From positions 186,001 through 250,000 of the forward strand of contig JALMLS010000418.1 in assembly GCA_038496445.1 (NCBI GenBank): DNA of 64,000 bases. Direction: 5' to 3'. The position numbers were made by a program, and so were the translations under genes. Below the pieces are notes generated by a model. That model did not search any database and had not been told where the DNA came from. It worked only from the letters and a program-made list of their open reading frames with translations. Source of the DNA: Trichosphaerium sp. ATCC 40318. Its lineage: Eukaryota > Protista > Tubulinea. Every line of letters starts with the position of its first letter. The first letter of the stretch is position 1. This document shows positions 882-7,403 of this stretch, one piece after another.

Positions 882-1298
882 ACTTAGTTGTTAATTAAAT
901 CCTTGGTGGTTAAACGCGTTTATTATTACCATTGGTTGCCCGCAATGCCGTTATGGGTACAAAACTGTCGACAGCTGAATTTTCATTTGGCTTTTTTAGG
1001 CGGACTTATTTGCGCGAAGCATGACGTTATAATACCTATTCTGTAGCAGCGCGAGCATTAAGTGGGTTACACTTTACACATTTAATTCGTAACGTACTGC
1101 TACTACAACGAAGAGAAATATATTAAGACCCATCTTACACAAGCTACGGCTATTGGTCAATGGTTCAGACCACTGTTGTAGCCGTACGCATAATATTAAC
1201 CAAAAGTTTTGATCTTTCTTGCGTTTTGTTTTAAAACGGTGTACGTTGCAACCCTATTGAATGACAATAACAGGAAAGCGCTCTGTAAGAGTACAGAT

Positions 1299-4200
1299 AT
1301 GGAACATTCAGAGTATTTATTTCAACTCGTTCTAAGAGATCCAGAAGCTTTTGAGCTATTCCAGACGTTCCTAAAATCAGAATACGCAAATGAAAACCTC
1401 GATTTCTTTTTGGCCATTGAAAGCTTCAGGAAGCATTTAAAAACAGGTACAATTACTTTATGACGCATGTTACTGACGTACAAGAAGACAATGAGAGCGC
1501 TATAGCAATTTACACTCAGTTTTTCGTGGAGGATAACATAAACGTCAGCGGACCAACAGCACAAAAGCTTGTTAATTGTTTCAAGCAGAAAAAATTCTGT
1601 AGAGACTCATTTCAGAAGGCTCAATACGAGATTTATATAAACATTGTTACAGACTTATTTAATCGCTTCCGGAACAATAAACTATGGAAAGAATTTACTT
1701 ACAAGAGGGAGAACAGTTTACAGGATATATTAAGAGATGATTGCCTGTCTGAAGTGCGCTTGGATCATTTTTCTGAACGTTTGAAGTTTCGTGCTAACCA
1801 ATTTTTTTAAATGAAGGCGTTGCGAGAGTATCTGTATGAGAACGGTAGAGAGCATGATGTTATGGATTTTATGATGTCCGTGATTGATTTTAAACAAGTA
1901 CCAGATAAGGTAAGTCAATTGAACCCGAATGGGTTTATATTGTTACCAACGCCATGTAACAATTGTCTTTAATCTATTACGCTGTTTTATTAACTAGATC
2001 TTTTACTTCAGCCTTCAGAATTACAAAAGCACGGAAATGAATTAATTCATCGCTATTTCACACCAGTACAACGTTTAAGATTATCTAAGGCGATGACAAA
2101 CGATATTATCAATACAACGAAGTTTGATTCATCAACTTTTGATAAAAGCTTTCAAGCGTCATTTGCTCATATTATAGCAAGGCATTTACCTTATTTCCTA
2201 CACAGTCAATACTACAAGAAGGCAATGACAGCACAGAAAGAAAAAGTAAAGGTACTTGTGAACCTCTTTCCTCAAAACAAAGTATTCTTTATTTTCATCC
2301 TCTAACTTTTTCTGAAAAAAGGGTGGCCGATTCTTATTGAGAAAAGCTCGTGTTGTAGTTGTAGGAGGATCGCTTGGTGATGCTTCAGGAGCAATAATTG
2401 CTAGAGCACTTGATAAAGAGCCTAGTTTTGATGCTGTATTTATTGACTCAAGCGTAAGTTTTACCCGTTTTTTTCTTTCTTTTTTTTTTTCTCTCAAATA
2501 AATCAAGTACAATCGTTTCAAAACGATTCATTTGAACGTATACAGTTTGAGACAGTACCATTCTAACTATTGGGGAACTTGGCATCTAAATCTACAAACG
2601 ATTAACTCAAAAAAAAGTTTGTTTTGTCATTTTCTAGTATTGTACTCTATTTTTCCGCTTTTATTTACTTTATTCACTTAGGAACGTTTTGAGTTAACTC
2701 CGGCTATATTATGTGCTTTAAGAACTAAACATAATAGAGTACAAGAAGCAACACAACTATACGCTATAGATCATGCTAAATATCTTAAAAACACAAAAAT
2801 AATTACAGAATTTGTTTCACAAATATCTCCAAACAAAATAGTCCTACAGAATAGAACATTGTACTATGATTATCTTATATTATGCTCTGGACATTGTGTA
2901 TACTCTGGATCATTTGATGGAAGTTTATCAAGCTCTGCTGTTAAAGATTTTGATATCCGACATTTAGTTGGACAAGATTTGTGGAACGTTAAGAAGATAG
3001 CTATCATTGGTTCAGGTACATTTCCACCAAAAAGTCTGAGGAATGTTGACCTTTAATTAAGGTCGGTTGGCTATTGCTGCTGCTTTTGAGGCTTTGACTT
3101 GTTCTCCGTCAACACATGTACATATAATAACAAAATCAAAGACGTTATTGGAGCATATAGATGAAGTTGTACGTAAAACAATACTTTTTTTTTTTGGATG
3201 TTTTTTTTTACAGTCTGATTAATCTTTTGGGGTTCTTATTTTTGTGCGTTTAGGTAGCAGAAAAGATAGAAAAGATTCTACGGAAGAAGGGAGTTACATT
3301 TGATTTTAATGTAGATACGACCAAACTTAAGAAAACAAACAAGACGTATAAGGGATCTGGAGTCACTTTTAAGGCAGATAAATTACTTATTTGTGAGGAA
3401 GGACCTGATACAGAGTTTCTTAAACATAGCTTTCCAGATTCCTTGGATACTCGATCTTACGTAAAGGTAACTACAAGAGATAAACGTTGGCTGAAAACCA
3501 TTCCTTTGGTTTCTTGTTTTTTTCCGGAAAAAAAGTTTGCCCGCTTTCTCTCATTCGTTTTCTCTTTTCCTTCTCATGTTTCTGGTTTGGCTACAGTGCT
3601 TCTCTGCTGTTTATTTTCTATCCGGCTTTTGTATTCATTTTATTATTTAGGTTAACCAGCATATGCAAGTATTTGGCTGCCCGAACATATTTGCTGGTGG
3701 TAGTGTAATATCAAATTCTAAATGTATCTCAGCCGAATCAGTTCAAGCACAAACTTCAGTTATAGTAAAAAATCTTAAGCTGTTATCTAAAGGAAAGGAT
3801 CCTAAGAGTATAATTGTCGTACGTACAAAACGAAAGTCAACAAAAAACCAAAAACCACAATTTCTTTGAAAAAAAAACTAAATAAAAAACAGGTTCCAAA
3901 AGATGAAAAAGATTACCTGTGTATGGGCTCTGGCGCTGCTCTAATATATCAGAATAATAAGTAAGTTTAGTTATCCATTTATACGCAGTTAGATGTCTAA
4001 CAACGCTATTAGGATCATAGAAATAGGTTCAGGTGGTTACCGTGTACAGGAGAGTCAGTGGAGAGCTTTAATGAATCAATTACAAGGAAAGAAATATAAA
4101 CTCGCTAGACCAAAGTTTATGTCCCATAGCATTGGGCGTAATAAACATTCCTCAGAAGGTAAATCAAGATATACTAGGGTATTCAGGAAAGGTAGTAGCC

Positions 4201-5687
4201 GGAATAGTTGTCCAGCTAAGCAATCACAAAAGGAAGATTTACCACCAAGAGTAAAGGTACTTTTTGTTTTGTTACTTGAGAACTTTATCGATACTTATGC
4301 CCTTATTTGAAGGTTCTTATTATGGAATGTATATCGTACACTACGCTAGCAGTTCTAAATAATGTGTTAAAACAGGGTATTGGCGTTAGGGTGGCTGTTC
4401 CTAAGTTTTGTGCGAAAAAACTAGGTACACTTTTATTACAAACTCCCACGTTATTCGTTTGTCTCTAACAGTTGAATTATAGCGTCCAAAATAAAATCCT
4501 TGGCCTCACGATATAGGCACATGGAGCTCGCTAATTTTGATATATCAGATATAAGTTCGATTAAATCAGTTCTATCTGGTAAGACATTGATTGTTTGATC
4601 AAAAACACTTGGATTTTACGTTTTCAGCTCACAATTACCTTTAGGTATTGATTTATTATTCCTCACTACTAGTAATGATGCATCTGATGTTACACTGAGG
4701 CTACCTAAATTAATTAATGGCATCAAGAAATGCGGCAATCACATCAAACATGTTGTCTTCTCTCTTTGTGGTAATTTATTCTGTGGACGTATGAGGAACA
4801 AATTAAGTGGGATTTATAAAAAAGCAGAGAGTATTGTAGAGACTCTAGATAACCCACTTACAGTATTACATCTTGCTGGTCTTTATGAAGATGTTCTATT
4901 ACGTGTTGCTAAATGTGTGAAGACGAAGAGAAGTATCTACGGCGTTGACGGATCGCGCTTTGTACGAGACAAGTCGAGATGTCAGATTACTAAATTTTTT
5001 TTCTTAGTTTTATATTTCTGTCAATGACTTTACAAGCGCGATTTGTACTATATTCACATCACCTGGAAAACATGCCAATATGCTATATGAGCTTGTTTAT
5101 GAGACAGAGCCGGGAGGAGTGTCTAATACTGTGTTAGCGACCTGGGTGACGCAATCAAGTATGTTTTTTTTTGCGTTTCACTAGAATTAAGTTACTTTCT
5201 TTTTCTTTTGTTCTTTTGTTCTCTTGGTTTTTCTGACTTGTATATAGTTGCCATGGAAGTCAAAGTCGTACTACATAAAGGCACGGATTGTGTGCCTAAT
5301 TTTACAAAACATTATGGCTATACTGATGAATATGCTATGGTAAGGACAGCAAAGACTTAATCCAACATAACGTGATTTTTTTCTAACCATTTTTTCTAGT
5401 TACTTTCAAACCAATTAGAAGAATATGGTGGCCTCTCGCGTGTGGCTTCAAGTACGTTACTACCTAATCCTGTTTAAAGATATATAATACTGATACTTTG
5501 CTCTCTAGATGACTTGGAACACTTGATAGGTAGAAAGCCTAAAGGGCTTTATGCTTGGATTCAAGAGAACAGCCACTTTTTTGTTCCGTTGCCTTCTGAA
5601 AAAAGTGTACGGCGTTTGAGGTGTTCTTTGAGCTCTGTAAGTAAAGACTCAACATCACCAAGCATATCTAGTGCAAGTGAGTGCTAG
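1299..5687 (+). CDS. Multi-exon fusion: two RGS domains + AIF/FSP1(AMID)-like flavoprotein domain + NmrA/atypical-SDR-like domain
   Basis: RGS1 LFQTFLKSEYANENLDFFLAIESFR...INVS...FNRF; RGS2 ALREYLYENGREHDVMDFMMSVIDFK...LPYF; flavoprotein VVVVGG, YDYLILCSG, IAIIGSG, YVKVNQHMQVFGCPNIFAGG; NmrA ELANFDISDISSIKSVLSGIDLLFL and DDLEHLIGRKPKGLYAWIQEN. Domain junctions splice in frame; stop TAG at 5685-5687. The start may lie further upstream. Confidence 0.8.
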
Positions 5688-5856
5688 TTTATGCCTCTTG
5701 TGGTTAAAAAACCTAAATTGTAATAAACTTGTGTACAATAATATTGCTGTTGTTGAAGTAAGTCGCTCTCCGTCAAACCTGCAAAACGTTCTTAACCCAC
5801 TTCTAGATCCGCCACTCAAGCAACGAAGAAGGCAAGTACTAGTAGTTTATTTGCAA

Positions 5857-7403
5857 TCACAACAGTAGTACAAAAATGAAAAGAGATATAACAAAAAGGC
5901 CGATGTGCATAGTCTTTGAACTCGAAGATGGTGCTGTGGTGGAGCCTGATGGTGCTGTAGGTCCAACTGTAGTTGGTGAACTTGTTATTGAACTACTAAT
6001 AGGACTACTGGTCGGATCTATAGGCTCTATTGGTTCAGAAGGCGCGTTCTCTGTCTCGTACCATATCCATTGATCAACAGTGAATTTTTCGTACTGCCCA
6101 ACCTTAAAAAACAGCTTTTCTGTGGGACCTTTTATCTCGCCAGTGTCAGAGTTGTTAAACATTTCTGTGTCAGAAATATTGACTAACAAATTGTTTTCAA
6201 TTGTTGACGAATAGCTTTCTATATTTCTCATCAAAGGCCTCTCCATCTCTCGGCATTCAAATATATTATTCTTTACTATGATCGTACTAAAGTTAGTTGA
6301 ACGTGGGAATCCAAGCAATCCTTCTTTTCGTGGGGTTGATGTTTTGTAAGCGATCACGTGATTATTCGAAAAGTTAAAGTTATTAAACGGTGATTGTGCC
6401 CAGAATAATCCTCTTCCTGGGTTCATGATAAGGTTATTAAACATTCTTGTACCTCCTGGCGCCACAACGTTACCAAAATCTGATATAAGGTTACCACCAT
6501 CGCTGGACGTACTGAAAGAAAAAAGATTATTACTCACAATGGCCAAGTTTCTCGCCCATTCTAGAGAGTATGATCTAAAGAATAAGTTGTGATGAATATA
6601 GAAACTATAGTCTCCAGGTACGGTTGAAGGACCACCACTATATTTAGGTATAGAGATAACACCATCCAAGAAGTTATGATCAATTTCTACGTCCCAATCA
6701 TTTTCGAAAGGAAACTCAATAGCGAAATTGACTTTAACTGTATTATGGTGTATGCGACAGTACCTACATTCCCTTCCTTTGAAACCATAAACACCATCAG
6801 ATATTCCACTAACACGTGATATATGATTATTCCAAAATTCTGAATGTTCAGTCCACGTGAGAAAAAGAGAACCACCAGTTGATCCTACTTTATCTGCAGC
6901 ATCAATAAAAATGTTATCGTGGATTTTACCATAGCTCATCCTGAACGTCCTTAAACCGCTCCAAGTTGCATTCAAAATTTGAACAAAAGCCATAGTAAAA
7001 GAGTCACAGTCATCGCCATAAACAAGACCATGAAGCTGTTTTTTCCCATCAAGAGTCATATTAGAAATAGTTACATTGTCTTTACCGAAACCCATCGATA
7101 TTAGATAAGCCGATTGGTTAACAGATGATGGGTTTACAGCGTTATCAGGTAGTCCATTGGATCCAGGGTTCCACGTGGCATCAACAGTGATCACTGTCTT
7201 TCCAATACCAGCGCCAACTAGAGTTTGCCCGTTTTTGAGTCTAAGTGTTTTAGATAGTACATAAACTCCTTCAGCAATGTTATCTGGTCGAATTCTACGC
7301 CGTTGGTAGTCGCATTGATAAGATCCGCTGTATTCTTCACGATATAGCTTGATACGCTACATGTGAACAGTATCGTAATGAGAATAACCGCTGAGAAGCT
7401 CAT
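5857..7403 (-). CDS. Intronless secreted right-handed parallel beta-helix (pectin lyase-like) protein with S/T/P stalk and C-terminal hydrophobic (GPI/TM) anchor; 1-nt frameshift near 7280
   Basis: Signal peptide MSFSAVILITILFTCSVSS. Shifting frame at ~7280 gives IAEGVYVLSKTLRLKNGQTLVGAGIGKTVITVDA, continuous with the 445-aa ORF. Repeated IHDN/IHHN/IDHN beta-helix rungs; hydrophobic end IGLFVISLFIFVLLL*. Confidence 0.8.

Follow-up and report, generated by a model that had tools for sequence, protein, structure and literature searches.

A tandem RGS protein of Trichosphaerium sp. ATCC 40318 with FSP1-like and NmrA-like modules and altered nucleotide-binding motifs

RGS proteins are known to gain many accessory domains. 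Tandem boxes occur in D-AKAP2/AKAP10, which carries two RGS-like boxes of which at least one is not a GTPase-activating protein (GAP) for G-alpha, and the NmrA family includes non-catalytic regulators that bind nicotinamide adenine dinucleotide or its phosphate (NAD(P)). A survey of architectures in G-protein-coupled receptor pathways emphasized how widely domains are shuffled in RGS proteins and mentioned no oxidoreductase partner (PMC3971589). The nearest conceptual precedent for the protein described here is provided by the fungal RGS-LOV flavoproteins, Magnaporthe RGS5 and Fusarium LovB, in which RGS is combined with a flavin-related sensor (PMC10056346). The LOV domain is a small fold of the PAS type that binds flavin mononucleotide and senses light, whereas the partners in our protein are an FSP1-type fold for two dinucleotides and an NmrA-like fold, in both of which the cofactor motifs are eroded. 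Its gene lies at positions 1299 to 5687 on the forward strand of a window of 64,000 nucleotides (nt) from Trichosphaerium sp. ATCC 40318 (contig JALMLS010000418.1, positions 186,001 to 250,000). Its spliced frame joins two RGS domains (RGS1 and RGS2), an FSP1-like module and an NmrA-like module, and with moderate confidence we read the product as a GAP with a non-catalytic tail derived from oxidoreductases. The combination of an RGS pair with two apparently oxidoreductase-derived modules is unusual. No description of this order was found in the literature on RGS domains with oxidoreductase-type partners or in the sequence libraries reached, and within these searches the statement of a preliminary description, made from the sequence alone, that the architecture is not known from characterised proteins has held.

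The locus is one real, expressed and spliced gene for a multidomain RGS protein. Three-frame translation and hand-splicing resulted in 18 coding exons with 3012 nt and 1003 codons, ranging from the ATG at 1299 to the TAG at 5685-5687 (Table 1). None of the 18 exons contains an in-frame stop codon, all seven split codons of the hand-spliced model are sense codons, and the introns of the coding region (41-228 nt) are without exception of the GT..AG type. With a G+C content of about 35 % and short introns of the GT..AG type, the region has a eukaryotic character. Public sequence contigs from four runs and three studies (X1-X4; X3 and X4 represent the second study, and X2 the third, which is labelled as another organism) were placed on window positions 1200-5900. 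A single intron-free contig of 3135 nt from X1 spans the entire coding region from the exon of the 5' untranslated region (5'UTR) to about position 5704, beyond the stop codon. GT..AG joints in spliced contigs were found for 15 of the 17 coding introns (X1, X3 and X4, some of them also in X2), and the introns 4257-4312 and 4425-4482 fit exactly by length, the X1 record 2117-2327 having 211 nt (3+112+96). The RNA nature of the runs was only guessed; intron-free forms joined at GT..AG sites, however, can have no other source than spliced RNA. The first intron (1447-1487) measures 41 nt, and its joint is supported in three runs. An in-frame TAG at 1179-1181 shuts the frame upstream, which places the start codon at 1299. 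The single frame through RGS, RGS, FSP1-like and NmrA-like modules that had been proposed in the preliminary description is borne out by the 3135-nt contig together with the open frame, and regarding the scenario of transcripts that end between the domains, this contig proved to be continuous from the 5'UTR to past the stop.

Independent evidence for the architecture comes from the same genome. A six-frame search of the 70-Mb assembly of the organism with exon 6, followed by exon-wise tblastn, retrieved three further loci, which are designated C1, C131 and C407 (Table 1); exon 6 matched the paralogs with E-values of 9e-12 (the C131 exon) and 5e-10. In C1, RGS2 ends within one uninterrupted exon that also contains a canonical GGGFAG motif, so that the fusion of RGS and flavoprotein is documented there without any splicing decision. 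A probable coiled-coil tail follows the NmrA-like part of C1.

Domain searches of the spliced model were run exon by exon. The first two exons match complementary halves of the Pfam RGS profile (PF00615), exon 1 with 32.5 bits at profile positions 2-40 and exon 2 with 27.8 bits at positions 48-117, both above the cut-off of 23.9 bits. In the PDB, exon 1 matched the boxes of RGS10, RGS16, RGS1, RGS8 and RGS4 with E-values from 2e-6 to 1e-4, which are boxes of the R4, R7 or RZ type; exon 2 yielded no phmmer match in the PDB at E 0.01. The residues Asn88, Asn128 and Asp163 of RGS4 are critical G-alpha contacts (PMC8252600), and according to our alignments RGS1 retains equivalents of all three. 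Its ANEN stands opposite SEEN of RGS10 in the Asn88 column, the Asn128 column falls within INVSG in a MAFFT alignment, and at the end of exon 2 TDLFNRF stands opposite RDSFPRF of RGS17, where the Asp and the Arg that belong to the helix-8 motif are preserved. RGS2, which is encoded by the end of exon 2 and exons 3 and 4, exhibits the RGS fold signature, but its three contact columns are occupied by Val, Arg and Arg. Its exon 4 scores 15.6 bits (E 0.021 library-wide, positions 44-116). The equivalents of Asn128 and Asp163 are likewise absent from RGS2 of C1. The C1 exon that bridges the two boxes, with the last part of RGS1 and the first part of RGS2, scores 37.9 bits with the Pfam RGS profile.

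Both RGS domains of the preliminary description are hence present, one above and one below the Pfam cut-off, but the second lacks the residues for contact with G-alpha. RGS1 is probably a GAP-competent box and RGS2 a diverged one, which would leave the protein with one working GAP domain and not two. In its score and its three contact residues RGS1 resembles the canonical RGS proteins (R4, RZ and R7; RGS10, RGS16, RGS4), from which the complete protein differs by its tandem boxes, the second without contacts, and by an oxidoreductase-derived tail of about 650 residues. D-AKAP2/AKAP10, compared by its known architecture and not by sequence, is similar in its tandem RGS boxes, the remaining architecture being unrelated. 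The G-protein system of the organism is very large: 152 G-alpha exon matches are distributed over dozens of contigs, and 31 RGS exon matches correspond to about 25 or more loci. The genome also contains 53 DEP exon matches.

The middle module is of the FSP1/AIFM2 type and, with about 360 residues, similar in length to FSP1 (368-residue PDB chains). Its exon-wise matches to Pyr_redox_2 (PF07992, cut-off 26.1 bits) are partial, sub-threshold and located at the expected profile positions, with 17.7 bits for window exon 8 (186-239), 17.3 bits for an exon of C1 (2-30) and 17.4 bits for the C131 exon (7-108). The assignment to the AIF/AMID(FSP1)-type flavoproteins, which had been made in the preliminary description, is supported mainly because of the paralogs. 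FSP1 is the only meaningful PDB match of the C131 exon (9ift_A, E 0.0022, residues 12-108), to which exon 6 of the window is linked by the tblastn match reported above. A profile of four paralogs gave weak PDB matches to flavoproteins of the FMO/NDH-2 class at the 'ATG' motif, and phmmer with exon 6 against the PDB returned chance matches only.

The motifs quoted in the preliminary description were all found, namely GGSLGDASG, IFAGGS and MECISYTT at the positions listed in Table 1 and GSGRLA at 3009-3015 plus 3062-3072. In the fingerprint for flavin adenine dinucleotide (FAD) of the window copy (GGSLGDASG), Ser takes the place of the third Gly and three residues are inserted at the pyrophosphate-binding turn; the paralogs have GGGFAG or GGGIAG. 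The GD motif reads FAGGSV (Asp to Ser) in the window, FVAGAV in C1 and FAAGDI in C131. The second fingerprint, GSGRLA, extends across the junction of exons 6 and 7, which was confirmed in transcripts, and has the pattern GxGxxA. This pattern is a form of the dinucleotide fingerprint used by NADPH-binding enzymes, and some flavoproteins tolerate unusual loops. The notion that every nucleotide-binding motif is altered therefore applies to the FAD loop, the GD motif and the NmrA loop, but not to GSGRLA, which is an accepted form and not a loss. The altered FAD loop and the lost GD aspartate argue against a bound flavin, and the second site could be the only place that is still able to bind a nucleotide. 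The module is comparable to FSP1/AIFM2 (AMID), an NAD(P)H:quinone oxidoreductase, in size, motif order and fold class. It differs by its FAD loop (GGS-LGD-ASG), its GD equivalent (GGS) and its internal position in the protein, and it is probably not a flavoenzyme.

For the C-terminal module an NmrA/HSCARG/QorB-like origin is supported by a home-made profile of 13 members, which comprises E. coli QorB together with 12 proteins from plasmids that carry an annotation as SDR (short-chain dehydrogenase/reductase), NmrA or HSCARG. It was scored on all exons and the open stretches of the paralogs with the HMMER filters off, and for the three matching exons named below 300 shuffles each were scored as well. 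The last exon of C131 reached 20.6 bits (E 1.2e-6, positions 205-288, hhalign 92.6 %). Exon 18 of the window, which is homologous to it (tblastn, E 1.7e-5), reached 7.8 bits (E 0.011, positions 265-288, within the profile region 262-288 that it shares with the C131 exon; hhalign 58.6 %, E 9.5e-5) with 0.9 bits for the best of its 300 shuffles, and the equivalent of this exon in C1 reached 5.4 bits (E 0.056, positions 256-279). The shuffle maxima across these three exons ranged from 0.9 to 3.0 bits. The hhalign probabilities are comparable to the 73 % and 53 % of two genuine NmrA-like exons from this genome that served as positive controls, and the weak hhalign matches of several further exons follow one another along the profile as expected. 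When exon 12 was aligned without gaps to bacterial GATGxxG proteins in MAFFT, the pattern of strand, loop, helix and strand was reproduced. The position of the GATGxxG loop is occupied by ECISYTT (window copy), SGTSKVA (C1) and NGHLTTP (C131). A GxxGxxG loop is thus absent from all three copies including C131, in which the flavoprotein motifs are intact, and the NmrA-like domain is therefore unlikely to bind NAD(P).

The Pfam NmrA model (PF05368) matched none of the window exons and none of the paralog stretches examined at E up to 1, and a six-frame scan of the genome at E up to 10 gave no match at the window locus and recovered canonical NmrA-like genes elsewhere. One of them, an NmrA/HSCARG-like gene on C102 (44854-45563, reverse strand; L009/L010), lies above the Pfam cut-off and served as positive control. 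Exon 14 exhibits no BLASTP similarity to this gene, and the C102 exon had no tblastn match among the plasmids, after which E. coli QorB was taken as the seed of the profile. In a library of 1.84 billion representative proteins, phmmer found no match for exon 14, not even the query itself; the proteome of the organism is evidently missing from this library, and the result speaks against close relatives but says little about distant ones. Exon 14 and the last exon of C131 gave no matches in metagenome scans, and in the ESM Atlas exon 14 found only low-score look-alikes of leucine-rich repeats and the C1 junction exon no usable match. Against the PDB, phmmer with exon 14 returned chance matches only; the chance matches for exons 14 and 6 include annexin and lysostaphin. 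Exon 14 alone in AlphaFold2 produced an all-helical, unusable model with a mean predicted local distance difference test score (pLDDT) of 52. For the NmrA/atypical-SDR domain of the preliminary description, the home-made profile and the C-terminal signature uphold the assignment, but the Pfam model finds no match and the Rossmann part is recognizable only by its pattern. The module is thus similar to the atypical SDRs NmrA, HSCARG (NMRAL1) and QorB in its C-terminal signature and its strand/helix pattern, and it differs from them by the missing Pfam match, the missing GxxGxxG loop and a central exon without detectable relatives.

The comparison of the copies allows the origin of the tail to be traced. 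The loss of flavoprotein motifs is graded, with C131 intact, C1 partially affected and the window copy showing the strongest loss. Judging from the paralogs, the tail descends from a protein with FSP1-like and NmrA-like parts, a type that is still present as C131, and the RGS pair would have been joined to it before the window and C1 copies split. Upstream of the flavoprotein genes of C131 and C407 no credible Pfam domain was detected, and neither locus has a DEP match. A Lys/Ser-rich low-complexity region is located upstream in C131, a gene that probably shows what the ancestral tail looked like.

The window and the contigs differ at 14 exonic sites, which are located in exons 1, 4, 5, 6, 8, 9 and 18 and hence also in exons with eroded motifs. 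Thirteen of these differences are synonymous third-position changes, and one exchanges Ser for Ala. The synonymous ones include six of the seven differences in the flavoprotein-like exons and the sole difference in exon 18. This proportion indicates that the gene is under purifying selection and does not represent a decaying copy. The reading as a pseudogene was rejected.

Table 1. Exons of the RGS gene on the window and paralogous loci on other contigs (C1, C131, C407) of the same assembly
Feature	Position	Strand	Evidence or remarks
5'UTR exon, 3' end	1154..1183	+	continues upstream for at least 81-164 nt; upstream ATG at 1160; loose-end consensus of X1-X4 matches window
5'UTR intron, GT..AG, 90 nt	1184..1273	+	contigs skip from 1183 to 1274
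Coding exon 1, start codon, first half of RGS1	1299..1446	+	Pfam RGS 1.2e-7, positions 2-40; joint 1446/1488
Coding exon 2, second half of RGS1 and start of RGS2	1488..1753	+	Pfam RGS 3.7e-6, positions 48-117; joints
Coding exon 3, helix 3-4 region of RGS2	1817..1909	+	joints 1753/1817 and 1909/2012; alignment
Coding exon 4, second half of RGS2	2012..2251	+	Pfam RGS E 0.021, positions 44-116; alignment
Coding exon 5, FSP1-like strand 1 and altered FAD loop GGSLGDASG (2364-2390)	2322..2453	+	paralog alignment; joint
Coding exon 6, FSP1-like, 'ATG-motif' region, start of second fingerprint	2682..3015	+	tblastn to paralogs 9e-12, 5e-10; alignment
Coding exon 7, completes GSGRLA	3062..3168	+	joint 3015/3062; alignment
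Coding exon 8, FSP1-like NAD(P)H sub-domain	3254..3466	+	Pfam Pyr_redox_2 E 0.0026, positions 186-239
Coding exon 9, GD-motif region, IFAGGS (3687-3704)	3651..3818	+	paralog alignment
Coding exon 10	3893..3960	+	contig joints
Coding exon 11, end of FSP1-like module, basic Ser-rich linker from about 4100	4013..4256	+	joint 3960/4013; peptide
Coding exon 12, NmrA-like strand 1, loop, helix A and strand 2; MECISYTT (4322-4345)	4313..4424	+	gapless MAFFT alignment; exon length fits X1
Coding exon 13	4483..4578	+	frame-consistent GT..AG sites; length fits X1
Coding exon 14, central NmrA-like part	4645..4961	+	joints
Coding exon 15	5008..5158	+	joints; weak hhalign match, positions 168-195, in expected order
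Coding exon 16	5248..5339	+	joints
Coding exon 17	5400..5451	+	joints
Coding exon 18, D-L-E-x-L-x-G-R-K-P (5511-5582), Ser-rich tail, TAG (5685-5687)	5509..5687	+	NmrA/QorB/HSCARG profile, hhalign
C1 (L006), RGS-RGS-FSP1-like-NmrA-like	about 266900-271170	-	25-40 % identity; GGGFAG and GCGAMG kept, GD is GA
C131 (L007), FSP1-like and NmrA-like	about 92400-95300	-	no RGS found; GGGFAG, GGGPVG and AAGD all canonical
C407 (L008), FSP1-like gene			GGGIAG

Some further features of the transcript and its surroundings were observed. An upstream open reading frame of 12 codons (1160-1183 plus 1274-1288) begins in the 5'UTR exon and spans the UTR intron; its stop is located 11 nt upstream of the main ATG at 1299, and it may have an effect on translation. 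Many introns contain long pyrimidine runs on the coding strand, for example 1447-1487, 2454-2681, 3467-3650 and 5159-5247. A contig of X2 lies inside intron 8 (3482-3603) and shows 5 differences in 122 nt, compared with about 1-2 % in exons. X2 therefore includes unspliced RNA or DNA in addition to spliced forms, and sequence evolution is faster in this intron than in the exons. Downstream of the RGS gene and convergent with it, an intronless open reading frame of 445 codons (5857-7194, reverse strand) has a Ser/Thr/Pro-rich stretch and a hydrophobic C-terminus; the stop codons of the two genes are 170 nt apart.

According to the reading that we favour, RGS1 of the 1003-residue protein would speed up GTP hydrolysis on one or more of the many G-alpha subunits of the organism, and RGS2 and both decayed oxidoreductase modules would catalyse nothing. 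The tail together with RGS2 would represent a regulatory, targeting or partner-binding module, for which dimerisation, contacts with the membrane or a quinone site handed down from the FSP1-type ancestor, and residual nucleotide binding at GxGxxA are possible routes. Several points weigh against this proposal. The GAP competence is deduced from three residues only, and the equivalent of Asn128 is based on the MAFFT alignment and the Pfam positions rather than on a solved RGS structure. The term 'non-catalytic' is derived from motif loss, and both unusual loops and GxGxxA can work in other enzymes. The Pfam NmrA model matches no exon of any of the three copies, and for the N-terminal Rossmann part of the last module the support consists of the pattern and weak ordered matches only. 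Purifying selection documents that the tail matters, not what its role is, and the variant data exclude exons 10-17.

The preliminary description had proposed that two pseudo-enzyme modules may couple redox state to the shut-off of heterotrimeric G proteins. In this model FAD, NAD(P)H or NAD(P)+ would still be bound by the decayed modules but not turned over, and the G-protein shut-off by the RGS part would be under redox control. This scenario is conceivable, though we consider it unlikely. It agrees with the retention of the second fingerprint as GxGxxA, the purifying selection on the tail and the precedent of the RGS-LOV flavoproteins, in which RGS is coupled to a flavin sensor (PMC10056346), and a member of the NmrA family, HSCARG/NMRAL1, has been described as a sensor of NADPH (PMC3602244, PMC4690889). 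It is difficult to reconcile with the FAD loop, with its Gly to Ser exchange and three-residue insertion, with the lost GD aspartate, and with the lack of the NmrA-type glycine loop from all three copies, even C131, which makes nucleotide sensing at that site unlikely. Doubtful, too, is a related possibility in which the FSP1-type and NmrA-like pair has turned into a metabolite-sensing input: the tail would bind NAD(P)H at GxGxxA, or a quinone, and would gate the GAP activity or the location of RGS1 through its conformation or oligomeric state. Redox or quinone status would then be tied directly to the shut-off of G-alpha, and the three paralogs would document how an enzyme became a sensor step by step. 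It appears improbable that the tail, with its unorthodox motifs, still works as an NAD(P)H:quinone oxidoreductase, which would make the protein a GAP and a reductase at once. Both ancestral families include quinone reductases (FSP1, and E. coli QorB with its annotation as NAD(P)H:quinone oxidoreductase), GxGxxA is kept, the module has about the length of FSP1, and selection is purifying. However, three of the four nucleotide-binding signatures are changed where paralogs of the same genome stay canonical, and the insertion in the FAD loop affects the very turn that binds pyrophosphate.

The opposite view, that the tail is a functionless, decaying relic of a fusion and that the RGS part alone matters, has very little probability. 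The progressive erosion of motifs across the paralogs and the central NmrA-like exon without detectable relatives are compatible with decay, but about 650 codons have stayed open over 14 exons, synonymous changes make up six of the seven differences in the flavoprotein-like exons and the only difference in exon 18, and the order of domains is kept in a paralog of only about 25-40 % identity, thus indicating long retention. Separate RGS, flavoprotein and NmrA-like genes that were merged by hand-splicing or by read-through are the least credible explanation. One contig that covers two genes is not in itself proof of a single transcript. Nevertheless, the frame of 1003 codons is continuous within one 3135-nt contig, the domain boundaries are ordinary GT..AG introns of 56-70 nt with no start codon or terminator in between, and RGS2 and the FAD motif share one exon in C1. 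Separate genes were rejected as an explanation.

The series of copies within a single genome, ranging from intact via partial to strong motif loss, with a window copy that is expressed and under constraint, is useful for studying how an enzyme is converted into a signalling pseudoenzyme. If the tail binds a nucleotide or a quinone, the protein would connect metabolic state directly with the shut-off of G proteins, which would be of importance in an organism whose G-alpha genes number in the dozens.

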